DNA of 63,720 nucleotides, filler included, from Octopus bimaculoides (Eukaryota): the NCBI RefSeq assembly GCF_001194135.2. It is 7 parts of 7 records of this genome, joined end to end, with 100 filler letters (N's around TTAATTAATTAA, not from the genome) between each part and the next. Parts side by side here need not be neighbours in the genome. Positions count along the whole stretch, not along the records: positions 60,889 to 62,600 come from NW_026421013.1; 6 more parts are not named here. One strand, 5' to 3'. Within the stretch, counting starts at the first letter, position 1, and every line of letters starts with the position of its first letter. Below the pieces are notes generated by a model. That model saw only the letters and a program-made list of their open reading frames with translations. It made no database searches and was not told where the DNA came from. Position numbers and translations under genes: made by a program. Shown here piece after piece: positions 9,590 through 63,720 of the stretch.

Positions 9590-11047
9590 TTGAGAATGCA
9601 GTTGCTGGTTGCTAGCAGTTGTGTAGGGCAAAGATTTACTTGGGGCAGGAGCACATTTCAACCAGTTCGTGGGTACCTGGTTATCTACGCCATACAAATC
9701 TAAATGGGGGTTTTCAAAACTATTGATATCTTTATCGACTGATATCAAAGTTCGATCACTGGGTCGACTGGAATTGAATGCTTCATGACCGTCTGCAAAC
9801 TGTTTTGTTGTAGAAACGAGTTCGTTCTCATTCTGGTAATTCAGATTAATTTTTCCCTCGTTTCTAGTCTTCCTACCAGGATCTGAACAGCTTTTATGTG
9901 CTAAGGAATTAGACTGATGGTGAACCAATGGTCCATTGAGGGGTGGCTTCACACAGTTTTCGATCTTAGATTCTGCAGGAAATGTATGGTTGTTCGTCAG
10001 TGAGTTTCCTTCATAGCGTAGATTAATTTCTTTTGAGGGAGCAGATTTTGTTGAGTGATTCGAAACTGGGTGCGACTGATAAAGATGATCTTGATGTGAA
10101 GGGAGATGTTTCTGGTTTGGTAAAGCTTGCTGGGGGTTTGATTTTGATGAAATAATTGTAAAATTTGGATTTGTCTGAATTTGTTCCTGATTAGCTGAAG
10201 TCTGGACTGGCCCAGTCGATAATGTTTTAGAATCCCGACATTTCGTGTAAATTTTAGGGGCTCGCACAGTTTCCTCACCTGTGTTGCCTGACTGGGTAGG
10301 TGGTATGGATTTAAATGCCATCATTTTTGTTTTGTCTGCATTGAGTTTTGTGTTTGCCTGGTTGTGTTCAGTCGAGTTTTGTTTCGTTTGCTCTCGTTTC
10401 AACCACGATTTAAACAAATGCTGTGTTGACCTTTTGAGAAAAGGCTCCGTATTAGCTGATGGAACCTCTGCCGTGGACATTGGTGACATTACTTGAGAAG
10501 AATAAGCCTCTTTGAGGTTATCATTGATGACTTCCGTGGGTGCGGTATTCATATGGAGAGTATGTGATGATCCAAATGGGCTTTGGTTTATATAGTTATG
10601 CACTACACCATTTGCTGTGAGCTGGTTACCCCCAAACCTTGAAGGACTGCTCTCAAAACTATTTGGAAGAGGGTTCATTGGTTTTGGTTTATGAATATCA
10701 GACGTATTTGGTGGACGCGATGTTAAGGGTTTTGGTGGGGACTGAGTAGGGATTTCATGTAAATCATCTCTAGTTTTGAAAGTCTTTAGATGTATTGCGG
10801 AAGGATTAGCATGTGTGTGTTGATGAGGGTGACTCCGCCTGTCTGCTTTGCTTAGTTTCGGAGGTAAATTATGGAATCTGTTGGATGCATTGTCAGAGGA
10901 GAGACACGCTTCTTCAGCGCTGTCTTCCCAGTTTTTAGGTGGGATGGATGGGGGGTTTTCTAACTTCTCTTTCGGTTTGCGACTCCTGGGGGGCAAATCT
11001 GGACCACTATGGCATTGTGGAGCTCTGGTCAATCTGTTGCCACTGAT
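8432..11047 (-). CDS. Formin gene: giant terminal exon, 871-aa low-complexity tail (ISGNRLTRAPQ...ENMAYMAV*) with PxxP motifs and an H7/Q15 run
   Basis: 2.6-kb stop-free frame. Acceptor TATTCTGTCTATTTGCAG|ATC at 11048/11047, phase 0. The link to the FH2 exons is inferred because the preceding exon ends inside an N gap. Confidence 0.8.
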
Positions 11048-11299
11048 CTGCAAATAGACAGAATATAAATTACTACTACTACTACTATTACTACTGCTGC
11101 TACTACTACTGCTGCTGCTGCTGCCACTACTACTACCACTACTACAACTACTGCTCCATTTACTATCCAGCATCAGAACAACAGATTTTTATTCCAAGAT
11201 TCCCAATAAAGTTATAAAGTTATTCAATCTTTGTTTTAAAATACCAAAATGTTAAAAATCATCGCTGACCAACATGTTTCATATCTCTGATTTGCGATG

Positions 11300-11714
11300 C
11301 ATTTAAACCAGCCATATCCGGCTCAGATATTCAACCTGTTTTATATTCAAACCGGCCAGATCCGGTCTTTTGCATCTTCCTTACAATGCCATTCTAAAAA
11401 TGAACAACCACATCAGCCAAATCTCGAAACTACAAGATAATGTATGATTAATTCAAAGCAACGTGAATAAATAGCATTTCATTTGTCAGAGTAACCTGAA
11501 CACTAAAGAGTTAAATTGCCTAAATCTGACCCAAATATTCTACCTGTTTTATGGTCTGATCTGGCCTCTTACACCAAACCTATAATGTCGTTTTAAAAAT
11601 AAAGAATCGCATCATTGAAATCTCGAAACCACAAGTTAAAGCATGATTAATTAATAGCAATATAAATAAATAAACATTACATTTGACAGAATGATCTGAT
11701 TGCTGAAGGGTTAA
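11300..11714. mobile_element. Two tandem partial copies of the same TTAA-ended element
   Basis: Shared CATTCTAAAAATGAAC...CAAGATAATG.ATG.TTAATT...CATTTG.CAG blocks, ending GAGTTAA (11514) and GGGTTAA (11714). Confidence 0.6.
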
Positions 11715-16929: not shown

Positions 16930-17455
16930 NNNNNNNNNNNNNNNNNNNNNNNNNNNNNNNNNNNNNNNNNNNNNNNNNNNNNNNNNNNNNNNNNNNNNNN
17001 NNNNNNNNNNNNNNNNNNNNNNNNNNNNNNNAATTTTTTTTTTAATCGTTCCGATCACTGGACTGTAGTCATGCTGGGGCACAGCCTTGAAGGGTTTTAG
17101 TCGAACAAATCGATACCCAGTAATTATGTGGGTTTTTTTTTTCTTTTAAGTCTGGACCTTAGTCCCTTTTGCTGAACCACTTTGTTACGGGGACATCGAC
17201 AAATCAACGGGTTGGGGAATAGACACACACACTCACATTAATGATTGCAGATTCAGTACTACACCTGAATAAGGATCTACTTTTGGATGTTGCTGGAAAT
17301 TTAATGATATACGTACGTTATTTCCACAACAACCCCACTCAATACTTCATTTCAAAAGTCTGCGTTATCAATAAACCCTGAGTCGTTAGCGAACACTTCA
17401 GGAATTTTAATATAGAAAGGCGCAGGCGTGGCTGTGTACTAAGAAGATTGCTTCC

Positions 17456-17491
<36 letters not shown>

Positions 17492-18589
17492 GTGTGTGTG
17501 CGCGCGCGCTTGTCCCCACCGCCACCACCACCGCTTGGCAACCGGTGTTGGTGTGCTTACGTTCCCCATAAATTAGCGGTTCCAGAAAAGTGACTGATAG
17601 AATAAGTTCCAGGCTTTAAAGAAAGCATGTACTGGGGGTGATTCACTTGACAAAAATACTTTCGAAGGCGTTGCTCCAGCATGGTCGCAGTCGAATGACT
17701 AAAACATGTAAAAGATAAAAAATAAAAGGTATTTCCGACTAGATTATTTATAACAGATTTCGAGTGGTTAGACAACCTGTGAATGTAATGCAGATGTTCA
17801 TTAGGTTCACGGTAAGGATAGATTAAGCCAGTGATAACATCAAGAGATACACTGAGAAATGTAAACTTAGAGATCATTTCTAAATAAATACAAATATCAA
17901 AGTCTTTAAAGAGTTCGTGTAATCCTTAAGTAGCCTTCTGAAGATTAAGTAGTTAAAATTAGTGACAGTAAGAGCATTGTTTCGGCATAAACTTCCGCTA
18001 AAACCTCGAATTTATCTTTTAACTGGTACAATATAAGTAGTCCAGCACATACATACATACATACATACATACATACATACATACATACATACATACATAC
18101 ATCGCATCACAAGTAATTAGCTTATTTGATTTTTCTCCATCCATTAATTCAAGAGTTAACCTTTGCTGCATTTCTCATAGCTATACTGAAGAGCTCTAAT
18201 AAAGCCTAAACGTGTCTAAAGTTGTCACCGCACTTTCCTTGCTCCACACTGACATTTTTAAATCTATTTGAAGTATGTGATTGCCTTCTTTGCTTCAATA
18301 CATACGTTATTTGCCTTTCTTCATATGTAATCATCAACATTAATCAATTTTCTCATCATTACTGATCTAATTAAAATTGATTAAATATTTTGTTGTTCCT
18401 GTACAAACATAATCCTTGCTAGACTTATCCTATGAAAGTTTAGTGTTTTCGACCACGGACACAATGCGTTGACTGGTGCAGCATGCGAATTTTTGATCCC
18501 TTGGTCCGTTCGTGGGTACCGGACTCTGTCAGACATGCTAGTTGTAAGTCCACTGGATATTACTGTCCCGAGATAGGGACTCATAGGGC

Positions 18590-60725: not shown

Positions 60726-60956
60726 ATCATATATTCTTTTATTCTTTTACTTGTTTCAAGTCATTTGACTGTGGCCATGCTGGAGCACNNNNNNNNNNNN
60801 NNNNNNNNNNNNNNNNNNNNNNNNNNNNNNNNTTAATTAATTAANNNNNNNNNNNNNNNNNNNNNNNNNNNNNNNNNNNNNNNNNNNNCAGCAAAACAAA
60901 AGCAACATAAACGGCAATCCAAAAAGTAAGTTAGATATTTTCCTGATAATTTAATA

Positions 60957-62271
60957 ATGGTCGACTCAAATGTTAGAAAATGGGACCAGGTTTTTCAGGA
61001 CGCTATTCATGGAGCTATGCAGCTCCCACCACTCTGTGTAAAGATTATAAATACAACACAATTTTGGAGATTACGTAATATAAAACAATTAAGTTTGGTT
61101 AATTACGTTTATCCATCAGCTTCACATAATAGATTTGAGCATTGTCTAGGAACATGTTACCTAGCTGGGAAAATGGTTCGCCATCTTAAGCAGCAAAATC
61201 CCGATCTGGAAATATCTGATCGAGATATACTTTGTGTCGAAATTGCTGCTTTNNNNNNNNNNATCTGGAAATATCTGATCGAGATATACTTTGTGTCGAA
61301 ATTGCTGCTTTATGTCATGATTTAGGACATGCGCCTTTTTCTCATGTCTTTCAAGAAATTATCAACGAGTATCGAAACAAAAATGGAGGTGAAGAGTGGG
61401 AACATGAAGATGCATCATGTCAAATGTTAGAACATCTTCTTGAAGAGAACCCANNNNNNNNNNNNNNNNNNNNNNNNNNNNNNNNNNNNNNNNNNNNNNN
61501 TGGTAAATCAGAAAAATCTCAGAGACCAAAATTTCTTTACCAAATCGTCAACAATAAATCCTATAACATCGACGTTGATAAATGGGATTACCTGGCTAGA
61601 GATTCTCATTTTCTTGGTTTTGGAAAATCATTTGATCACGAGAGAATGATGAAAATGTCCAAAGTAATAGGTGATAAAATATGCTACAGAGACAAATGTC
61701 TTGATAATTTCTATGATATGTTTTATGCACGATATCGACAACATAAAACTGCTTGCAAACACAAAACTGCTCTTCTGTTTAATACACTGCTTGATAAAGT
61801 TTTCAACTCTGCCAATGAAGAACTCCAAATTTTCGAAAAGGTCGACGATATGAAGGAATTTACTTATTTAACAGATAATATTTTAGAGGAGATATCAAAG
61901 AATGAGGATAATGTAAGTCTCAGAGAGGCCCGGAATAAATTGAAGGATATAATCTATCGGTCTTATAAATACAAAGGAACAAACGAAGATGAAAATGACC
62001 AGGACGGAGAAGAGAGAATATTCTGTAAAGCCAATTTTGATTTTGGAGCTGGAGAAGGAAACCCATTAGAGAATATACCATTTTATAGAAAAGGTGAAAC
62101 CGAATCATTCACTTATAGTCAAGAACAACTANNNNNNNNNNTTATAGAAAAGGTGAAACCGAATCATTCACTTATAGTCAAGAACAACTAGATGAGAGGC
62201 TTTTGCTGCCAAGCAAATTTCGAATGGAAATCAGTCACTGTTTTGAAAAAAGCTGGAAGTCCAATGAGTAG
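60957..62271 (+). CDS. SAMHD1: SAMHD1-like HD-domain dNTP triphosphohydrolase, no SAM domain, apparently single-exon, ~398 aa
   Basis: Motifs DAIHG, QF.RLR.IKQL, HNRFEHCLG, CHDLGHAPFSH, WEHEDAS, IDVDKWDYLARD, FDHER, RDK, NPLENIPFYRK and LPSKF. In-frame TAA upstream at 60927; ataATGG start context. Removing two 49-nt overlap duplicates and counting the 47-N gap at face value gives 1197 nt in one frame, ending at TAG 62269-62271. Confidence 0.93.
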
Positions 62272-63720
62272 GAAACCTTAAGACCAATTAATGAAAACTA
62301 GGAAAGAAAAANNNNNNNNNNNNNNNNNAAAAAAAAAACAATAACAAGAAACAAATAAAAAATAACGAATCAAAGATAAAGCAGTGAAACATTGTGAGAA
62401 TTGAAATGTAACTTCGTAAAAGTTAAAAATGATGAAAATGTTGAAACCACTGAAAAATTCAAAGGTTAAAAATAGTAAAAACAATAATCTTAACGTAAAT
62501 TGAACGCTTTTTTATCTATTTGGAAATATTTGCATTTAATCTTGTAAAAGATTTCTTTTTAACATGTATTTTAACGTATTTTCTACTTTTAAAACATCAT
62601 NNNNNNNNNNNNNNNNNNNNNNNNNNNNNNNNNNNNNNNNNNNNTTAATTAATTAANNNNNNNNNNNNNNNNNNNNNNNNNNNNNNNNNNNNNNNNNNNN
62701 ACATATAGAAAAATTAATAATTAAAAGCACAATAAATGCGTATAATATAATACAAAGTAAATATCATAAGATGTCTTTATCTTATGATATTTACTTTGTA
62801 TTATATTATACTCATTTATTGTGCTTTTAATCATTAATTTTTCAAAATGTGACAGTGGATTTTCATCGATGAGTTCATGAACCTTGGTTCTTTTCCCTAA
62901 AACTATATATATATATACATGCACACACATACACATGTACACACACACGAAAATACATGCATACTAATAGAAAAGAGGAAGAGTGTATGAGAGAGAGAGA
63001 AAGAGATACACTACAATTTATTGGTTGAACATGATTGACAGAGACATTTTCCCTGTCCTTGTGCACATAAAGAGAAATATGGTCACACACATAAACAGAG
63101 GAGAGAGAGAGAGCGAAGAGAAAGAAGAGATAGTGTGAGAGGAGCATAGAAATGAAAGAAATATTGAAGTGTCTCATGTCAGATAAGTCAGTGTTGCCAA
63201 ATAAGAGGTGCTGAAATGACTGTGCCAAAAATAAGGATCTAGACTTTGTATGTGACAGATGTACAGGTGCAGTTGATAGTCAGAGCGTTAGTCAAAATAA
63301 CCTCCCAGAAAATTTCTGGCCTTGTCCTTAAGTTAACAATAATTATCAGTTACAAATATTATTGTTTTGTCTTCTTTTCCTTATCTAAATTTCTTTATCT
63401 TTGGCAAAAGAAAGATTATTGTATAATTTCCATAAGCAAGTGCCGCGAAAGTTCATGCCATTATCTATATTATTACGCATAGGTATTCTATCAGCCACAA
63501 TTTTTTCCTTTATCTAACTCACTTGTCAACTGCAATTCAAGTAATCAGCACTGGATGTTTCATTTGGCTGTGTGGTTAGGAGGTATGTTTTGGAACCAGG
63601 TAGATTTGGGTTTGATCTCACTATGTGGTAACTTGGAATGCTCCATTGAAATAGTCAATAGCTTCTGTTTCCTAGGTAACATAATGACTCATGGAGGAAG
63701 GGGGATCTGAAAGCATAGTT

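Follow-up and report, generated by a model that had tools for sequence, protein, structure and literature searches.

A SAMHD1-like gene on an orphan scaffold of Octopus bimaculoides as a probable intact member of a tandemly amplified, single-exon octopod family

We analysed a window of 63,720 nucleotides (nt), filler letters included, assembled from seven parts of the Octopus bimaculoides genome (GCF_001194135.2). Positions 60889-62600 of this window correspond, with full identity, to the unplaced scaffold LGKD02126151.1 (1712 nt; GCA_001194135.2), which carries a gene similar to SAMHD1, a restriction-factor-type enzyme that is encoded by a single-copy gene in mammals. The data presented below indicate that the scaffold very probably carries an intact copy of a single-exon gene from a family that is specific to octopods and was amplified in tandem; the family codes for SAMHD1-type HD-domain enzymes of about 400 amino acids (aa). 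The gene is already annotated as SAMHD1 or SAMHD1-like and is an ordinary member of a known enzyme family.

One continuous reading frame interrupted by assembly artefacts

A single SAMHD1-like coding sequence (CDS) was found on the plus strand of the scaffold, starting with an ATG at position 60957 and ending with a TAG at 62269-62271. The gene range on the scaffold, 69-1383, equals positions 60957-62271 of the window, and the sequence is 100% identical to the public models XP_014790261.1 (P0001) and P0297. Four runs of N interrupt the scaffold: three within the CDS (61253-61262, 61454-61500 and 62132-62141) and one in the A-rich 3' flank (62312-62328). The three breaks within the CDS had been pointed out in a preliminary description of this DNA, and we confirm them. 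Specifically, two correspond to unmerged 49-nt overlaps and one to a true gap of 47 N, the fourth run lying outside the coding part.

In the two unmerged overlaps, an exact 49-nt duplicate surrounds a spacer of 10 N (Table 1), so that the left contig ends with the very sequence with which the right one begins; this would be the signature of overlapping graph contigs that were joined by a spacer and left unmerged. Because each artefact inserts 59 nt (2 modulo 3), codon starts, expressed as position modulo 3, appear to change from 0 (60957-61252) to 2 (61263-62131) and then to 1 (62142-62271). When each 49-nt duplicate is counted once, the frame is continuous from the ATG to the TAG. No stop was found in the approximately 380 codons that can be read, and the sequenced parts are free of introns. 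At the position of the 47-N gap, O. vulgaris copies are coding and in frame over 51-54 nt, without an intron, the corresponding residues being visible in the aligned paralogues; the closest O. vulgaris copy, which matches all four segments in one frame, has 54 nt at this position. Therefore, the earlier observation that the HD domain and the C-lobe are read without introns stands for the sequenced parts, and the apparent frame shifts are traced to the assembly. The estimate of about 400 codons counts the duplicated overlaps once and allows for about 18 hidden codons. All the analyses reported here used the four segments separately.

The public models of this gene are affected by the same breaks. 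P0001 (333 aa) leaves out the second segment, and with it the HD motif, while P0297 (385 aa) bridges the gaps, gaining two residues from a duplicated overlap and lacking those hidden in the 47-N gap. Distortion was observed systematically among the public models of the family: in O. sinensis, P0293 (locus L011, 10001-39553) splices two neighbouring copies across 29.5 kb, and several O. vulgaris models begin at an internal Met, as exemplified by P0002 at L001 10001-11008. Models of this kind, in which the HD motif is omitted, overlap residues are added or neighbours are spliced together, would mislead counts and alignments of cephalopod SAMHD1.

A clustered family of single-exon genes in octopods

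The preliminary description had listed membership of a multicopy family among several possible explanations. This proposal was borne out, since single-exon paralogues arranged in tandem arrays were found across three Octopus species and Argonauta. In O. vulgaris, protein searches placed 11 or more annotated relatives on chromosome OX597824.1, in addition to one on a second chromosome. Five sampled loci at 24.95-25.42 Mb of OX597824.1 hold eight full copies and a broken one, on both strands, so that 0.47 Mb of this chromosome contains at least 8 full copies. A stretch of 30 kb in O. sinensis contains four full copies and one fragment, and O. bimaculoides has a second copy, uninterrupted, on a further orphan scaffold (1624 nt). 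Two family copies were found in Argonauta hians; the locus of one of them was retrieved, and this copy is single-exon. Internal stops are absent from all 15 reading frames inspected (14 family copies, two of them read only up to an insertion, plus the Argonauta protein P0032).

The similarity between O. vulgaris paralogues extends beyond the coding part, with about 300-600 nt shared ahead of the start codon and 100-300 nt downstream, and in some paralogue pairs a trinucleotide microsatellite is part of the shared upstream sequence. The resulting repeat unit of 1.6-1.9 kb matches the approximate length of the two O. bimaculoides orphan scaffolds. The gene would therefore stand alone on a small contig because the assembler broke at the borders of the repeated unit. 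A multicopy family can, in this way, yield mRNA-sized orphan scaffolds that resemble retrocopies or foreign DNA.

In neighbour-joining (NJ) trees, the family is monophyletic in 100% of 200 bootstrap replicates, and the Octopus copies exclude those of Argonauta in 100%. The O. bimaculoides gene groups with one O. vulgaris copy (L001p) and one O. sinensis copy (L011d), and all four of its segments are closest to L001p among the O. vulgaris copies, with 85-91% amino-acid identity per segment. Since orthologue groups include copies from O. bimaculoides, O. vulgaris and O. sinensis alike, the main duplications would predate these species, and either postdate the Octopus-Argonauta split or have been homogenised later. 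Only family monophyly and the groups within the family were taken from these trees.

A SAM-less protein with a complete metal-binding site

SAMHD1 chains of the PDB match three segments of the CDS (E 2.5e-31 for 61502-62131, 1e-27 for 60957-61250 and 1e-14 for 61265-61453), and the last of these is also matched by the Pfam HD profile (PF01966; E 1.6e-8, 35.3 bits, cut-off 22). Human numbering was transferred from the full-length chain 7UJN (7ujn_A) and checked against D311 and Y315, whose positions are known. Residues 11-97 align without gaps to human residues 116-202, and a full-length reading frame of the orthologue type is 37-40% identical to animal SAMHD1 over residues 11-408. The AlphaFold2 (AF2) model of a complete O. 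bimaculoides paralogue, P0294, has a predicted local distance difference test (pLDDT) score of 92.6 and superposes on human SAMHD1 cores with template modelling (TM) scores of 0.88-0.90.

The roles of individual SAMHD1 residues were taken from a review (PMC7045340). The metal-binding tetrad H167/H206/D207/D311 is complete in the O. bimaculoides gene, and the triphosphate and deoxyribose contacts Q149, R164, K312, Y315, D319 and R366 are all kept. The base pocket retains L150 and carries Y374C, Q375K, N380L and D383N; the first two changes are confined to the orthologue group of this gene, while the other two are common to all the Octopus copies tabulated. In allosteric site 1, R145, R451 and K455 are kept, while the guanine readers (D137N, Q142W) and the clamp K116 (K116Q) are altered, Q142W being unique to this copy. 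Allosteric site 2 is well preserved: V156, R333, R352, K354, N358 and K523 are all present and F157Y is conservative. Among the residues at the dimer-dimer contact, D361 is kept, and H364Y and R372T are altered.

No match to a SAM domain was found in the protein, which begins 10 residues before the K116 equivalent. Compared to human SAMHD1, four internal loops are absent from the alignment, including about 27 residues between human positions 461 and 496. The protein extends about 40 residues beyond the K523 equivalent, so that the 559-599 helix and T592 are gone. This agrees with the shortened C-lobe and the missing T592 tail noted in the preliminary description.

Table 1. Coordinates of the features described; positions refer to the window unless a locus (L001, L003, L009, L011) is named.
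Feature	Position	Strand	Evidence or remark
5' flank, untranslated leader or promoter-proximal	60889-60956	+	Lies within 60889-61252, 93% identical to O. vulgaris L001 9716-10080
Single-exon CDS, SAM-less SAMHD1-type HD-domain protein	60957-62271	+	About 400 codons expected; three assembly gaps
First metal-binding His (human H167 equivalent), NRFEH motif	61140-61142	+	Gapless alignment to 7ujn_A
Assembly artefact 1	61204-61311	.	Exact 49-nt duplicate (61204-61252 = 61263-61311) around a 10-N spacer, 59-nt spacing
HD dyad (human H206 and D207 equivalents), LCHDLGH motif	61316-61321	+	PDB and Pfam HD matches
True gap, 47 N, estimated length	61454-61500	.	Conceals about 17-18 codons, which lie in the helical linker leading from the HD motif to the second half of the domain
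Last metal-binding Asp (human D311 equivalent), IDVDKWDY motif	61577-61579	+	PDB alignment
Assembly artefact 2	62083-62190	.	Exact 49-nt duplicate (62083-62131 = 62142-62190) around a 10-N spacer, 59-nt spacing
3' flank, probably 3' untranslated region	62272-62600	+	A-rich; 17-N gap (62312-62328) inside an A-rich low-complexity run
D207N/H215Y copy	L001 3845-5086	-	
D207N/H215Y copy	L003 5924-7093	-	
D207N/H215Y copy, O. sinensis	L011 10004-11242	+	
D207N/H215Y copy, O. sinensis	L011 26861-28099	-	
D207N/H215Y copy, O. sinensis	L011 32424-33662	-	
D207N/H215Y copy, P0294	L009 229-1437		

Within the family, we observed a conserved subgroup of copies carrying D207N together with H215Y, some of them also D311N and K312Q, in all three Octopus species (Table 1); their frames are all open. 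Changes such as D207N, H215Y and D311N are of the kind that inactivates human SAMHD1, and the members of this subgroup are predicted to be catalytically dead pseudoenzymes.

Selection and protein evidence

The ratio of nonsynonymous to synonymous substitution rates (dN/dS) of the O. bimaculoides gene is 0.32 versus its O. vulgaris orthologue and 0.36 versus the O. sinensis orthologue; it is about 0.4 versus paralogues and 0.15 versus Argonauta. The gene is therefore under purifying selection, somewhat relaxed. In addition, the skin-mucus proteome of O. vulgaris contains an unambiguous peptide, KDETESFTYSQEELDER, assigned to LOC115217206 (PMC11431876, supplement). Among the sequences that we compared, the only two containing this peptide are P0002, the O. 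vulgaris orthologue, and the O. sinensis model P0293, which has the C-terminus of the orthologue; the O. bimaculoides gene differs from it at two residues. The O. vulgaris orthologue is thus translated. Taken together, the dN/dS values of 0.32-0.36 and the presence in skin mucus of a peptide unique to the orthologue suggest that the gene is probably functional.

These data also bear on the hypothesis that the scaffold is a non-functional relic or a chimera of paralogues, whose open frame would be fortuitous. Three breaks within 1.3 kb, two distorted RefSeq models and a residue (Q142W) seen in no other copy could be taken in this sense, and the collapse of a family could give mosaic contigs. 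However, a mosaic is difficult to reconcile with four segments that all have the same nearest O. vulgaris copy, and with overlaps that are exact and of equal length, as is the case for unmerged graph contigs of one locus. Decay is similarly at odds with the lack of stops, with dN/dS values well below 1 and with an orthologue detected as protein. Hence, we regard this hypothesis as improbable.

Intron loss and the question of retroposition

The absence of introns is real: the family copies are read in a single frame, while in a fish relative the equivalent 279 residues are split into 8 exons. The preliminary description had proposed, among its options, that the gene is a retrocopy. In its recent form, this would be a processed copy of a multi-exon octopus SAMHD1, inserted alone and possibly decaying, and the uninterrupted CDS, the A-rich 3' flank and the reverse-transcriptase fragments in the surrounding arrays are the features in its favour. 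The genomic context argues otherwise. Orthologues of the gene occupy corresponding positions in O. vulgaris and O. sinensis, their flanks being 82-93% conserved, and the upstream sequence common to the paralogues, together with the microsatellite of some pairs, fits duplication at the DNA level. The A-rich run after the stop codon is interrupted and is not a terminal tail, as flanking sequence conserved in the orthologue and in paralogues continues for at least 250 nt beyond it. Moreover, the copies are clustered in arrays and not dispersed, and the dN/dS values argue against decay.

As regards a parent gene, no multi-exon Octopus SAMHD1 appeared among the best 120-150 hits of each protein search, a number that is not exhaustive for Octopus. 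The most canonical octopod gene that we found, coding for P0032 of Argonauta hians (L008 3001-4341), is itself SAM-less and contained in a single exon of 1341 nt. Its 446-aa product largely retains the loops and shows 46-49% identity to the SAMHD1 proteins of bivalves, compared with 41% to the octopod family. As P0032 is single-exon, the intron loss seems older than the 400-aa family. In conclusion, a recent retroposition is very unlikely, and this part of the earlier proposal does not hold; a retroposition far back in time, when the lineage arose, is plausible but unproven. An unnamed protein from a public read-set assembly, P0307, was found to be 64% identical to P0032.

Host origin of the scaffold

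The whole scaffold, flanks included, aligns to positions 9716-11318 of the O. vulgaris locus L001 on OX597824.1, and family copies were also found on chromosome-scale contigs of O. sinensis and Argonauta. When a full-length reading frame of the family is used as query, SAMHD1 proteins of fish, echinoderms, molluscs and a sponge are about equidistant (37-40% identity, approximately 270-290 bits), and a cnidarian protein (P0353) ranks beside them. The nearest tree neighbours that bear an organism name are all animals, and two scans of 2.9 million viral contigs, one with a single protein and one with a profile, gave no viral relative. A viral or horizontal acquisition, or a contaminant or parasite contig, as the preliminary description had also envisaged, is therefore extremely improbable, even considering that the scaffold is tiny, unplaced and devoid of a linked host gene and that some fish and fungal proteins stood above other molluscs in the first HMMER list, since the alignment to an octopus chromosome, the proximity of animal SAMHD1 proteins, the empty viral scans and the uniform GC content of the coding part (0.27-0.36) all speak for the host.

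Two further results of the comparisons were set aside. The impression, given by the first HMMER list, that fish are closer to the family than molluscs was rejected: the top fish protein, P0018 (1171 aa), holds two SAMHD1 units and matches twice, so that its scores add up, and with a full-length query the animal SAMHD1 proteins score alike. The deep placement in the NJ tree was dropped, as the sister group alternated between a brittle star, a shrimp, the Argonauta protein P0032 and fungi; plant and fungal outgroups fell inside a long-branch cluster.

The preliminary description had also considered the lack of a SAM domain to be ordinary outside vertebrates. This view was not supported, since proteins combining SAM and HD domains were found in molluscs, echinoderms, a hemichordate and a sponge. 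As this combination is common in those animals, the loss of the SAM domain is a derived trait of octopods.

Proposed history and predicted function

Altogether, these observations lead us to propose that introns and the SAM domain were lost once and early, possibly by retroposition, and that the ancestor of the family already lacked both. The 400-aa family would then have grown by tandem duplication at the DNA level, with the upstream region carried along. The encoded protein would hydrolyse dNTPs (deoxynucleoside triphosphates) at its conserved metal site, and its regulation would differ, given the lack of the T592 switch, the altered dimer-dimer contacts and the changed guanine readers of allosteric site 1, whose phosphate clamps are retained. 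The natural reading of this pattern would be the diversification of a tandem immune-type family.

As regards the activity, the conservation of the catalytic residues makes it reasonably likely that the predicted enzyme splits dNTPs into deoxynucleoside and triphosphate in the manner of SAMHD1, and thereby leaves less dNTP for DNA viruses and reverse-transcribing elements. Without the SAM domain, the 559-599 helix and T592, and with changes at H364, R372 and the guanine readers of allosteric site 1, the chances appear about even that control of the vertebrate type is lacking and that oligomerisation and activation differ. The changes specific to the orthologue group, Y374C and Q375K, may hint at a shifted preference for the substrate base, a suggestion that we make only tentatively. 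A broader scenario, which we put forward as speculative and consider rather doubtful, is that octopods replaced a single SAM-bearing, phospho-regulated SAMHD1 with an arsenal of tandem intronless dNTPases. In this scenario, the pocket and the guanine site would be diversifying, the dead members (D207N and H215Y, with or without D311N) would act as regulators, decoys or nucleic-acid binders, and the whole would constitute a lineage-specific antiviral and anti-retroelement system of barrier surfaces such as skin mucus.

Several points weigh against the reading of the scaffold as an intact gene for an active enzyme of this family. The protein evidence concerns the O. vulgaris orthologue and not the O. 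bimaculoides copy, whose function is thus only probable. About 18 codons are unread, so that the window alone leaves room for an interruption in this copy, and the contig breaks may stem from near-identical paralogues or from heterozygosity. Deep in the SAMHD1 tree, the sister group of the family varies by replicate, and long-branch effects are obvious. With respect to activity, the changed pocket, allosteric and interface residues (Y374C, Q375K, N380L, D383N, K116Q, D137N, Q142W, H364Y and R372T) make a dNTPase function less than assured. In addition, a human construct truncated at position 583 loses tetramerisation and most of its activity (PMC7045340). For catalysis by the human enzyme, the HD core alone suffices (PMC7045340).

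Comparison with known SAMHD1 proteins

With these reservations, an intact member of a tandem octopod family is the reading that we adopt in comparing the gene with known systems. The HD core is 37-41% identical to that of vertebrate SAMHD1 (human, mouse and pig; PDB 4BZC, 7UJN and 6BRG), with the same fold, as judged from the paralogue model. The metal tetrad, the triphosphate and sugar contacts and most of the phosphate binders of both allosteric sites are common to the two groups, whereas the SAM domain, the four loops, the 559-599 helix and T592 are found only on the vertebrate side. The gene organisation differs as well, as the octopod genes are single-exon and multicopy in tandem, while the vertebrate gene is single-copy and has many exons.

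SAM-less proteins consisting of the HD core are also represented by SAMHD1 of Rhizophagus irregularis (PDB 9MR6) and by ZK177.8 of C. elegans (PDB 6PWY). The former is among the best structural matches (TM 0.88, E 6e-23, 35% identity), the octopod C-terminus being shorter still. We know of no tandem intronless families of proteins of these two types. Among molluscs, the SAMHD1-like proteins of Haliotis, Mytilus and Mercenaria belong to the same family and have RefSeq isoforms, but they have retained the SAM domain as well as the loops and the C-terminal tail; the octopod 400-aa family forms a clade apart from bivalve and gastropod SAMHD1, with 100% bootstrap. P0032 of Argonauta resembles the 400-aa family in being both SAM-less and single-exon. 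Bacterial and archaeal dGTPase/dNTPase HD proteins (PDB 2DQB, 2O6I and 2Q14), whose characterised members carry out the same chemistry, belong to the same superfamily; their matches are weak (E 5e-5 to 1e-3), they are far more distant than any animal SAMHD1 and they are not the source of the octopod gene.

Teleosts have likewise multiplied SAM-less SAMHD1-like genes beside the canonical gene, although the fish copy that we examined has 8 exons, and full-length queries reveal no special relationship between fish and octopods. The teleost proteins noted in this respect are P0012, P0243 and P0018. In Dallia pectoralis, the gene for P0012 (L006 6001-8984) shares a chromosome record with the canonical gene, their locus tags being 100 apart, and P0018 of Myxocyprinus, a cyprinid-type protein, has two SAMHD1 units in 1171 aa.

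Our full-text literature searches gave no description of a clustered octopod SAMHD1-like family, and only the skin-mucus proteome paper surfaced in them (PMC11431876). The pattern at the level of the octopod family is modestly new, and the window holds no new kind of system. For comparative immunology, the relevant aspect is the occurrence in octopods of at least 10 clustered intronless genes that have lost the regulatory modules of vertebrates, one subgroup of which lacks catalytic residues.

Flanking sequences and additional features of the arrays

The scaffold showed no Rfam match and no inverted repeats, and the longest open reading frame (ORF) on the minus strand is a low-complexity one of 68 aa. 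The 3' flank (GC 0.20-0.28) aligns with the flank of the O. vulgaris orthologue through approximately position 62568, and more weakly with the flanks of paralogues. A GTAAGT hexamer at 60926-60931, 25 nt before the ATG, is found in the same context, ATG included, in the O. vulgaris locus L001 (9753-9758). It resembles a consensus 5' splice site and is conserved between the two species; a leader intron or an alternative start may exist. Relative to the O. bimaculoides gene, the frame of the O. vulgaris orthologue (L001 9797-11008) changes once, in a homopolymer run close to its 5' end. The longest ORF of this copy does not include the ATG used in the latter, which could represent either a real difference or a homopolymer error of long reads.

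Some family members carry a repeat-rich insertion of about 150 residues, with motifs such as ESKMQ and GTI/GKI, as observed at L004 9785-11092 and 17176-18150 and in P0009 and P0296. The insertion site corresponds to the C-lobe loop of canonical proteins, and the O. sinensis version reads through it (555 aa). In O. vulgaris, the copy at L004 9785-11092 has its matching C-terminal part in a different frame, while no C-terminal match was seen for the one at 17176-18150. A family member with this insertion, A0A6P7U4P1, whose N-terminus is as in P0296, is listed as a master protein in the same skin-mucus proteome (PMC11431876).

Several copies are preceded, at a distance of 150-450 nt, by long trinucleotide microsatellites (L001 9197-9355 and 5224-5679; L002 1764-2383 and 4452-4690). 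The broken O. vulgaris copy, at L002 2338-5627, consists of pieces in three frames separated by microsatellite repeats. Fragments of mobile elements are also present between the copies, specifically an ORF matching RVT_1 (E 1e-11) and one matching the Pif1 helicase 2B domain (E 3e-12), located at L002 16000-16884 and 6856-7350, respectively.

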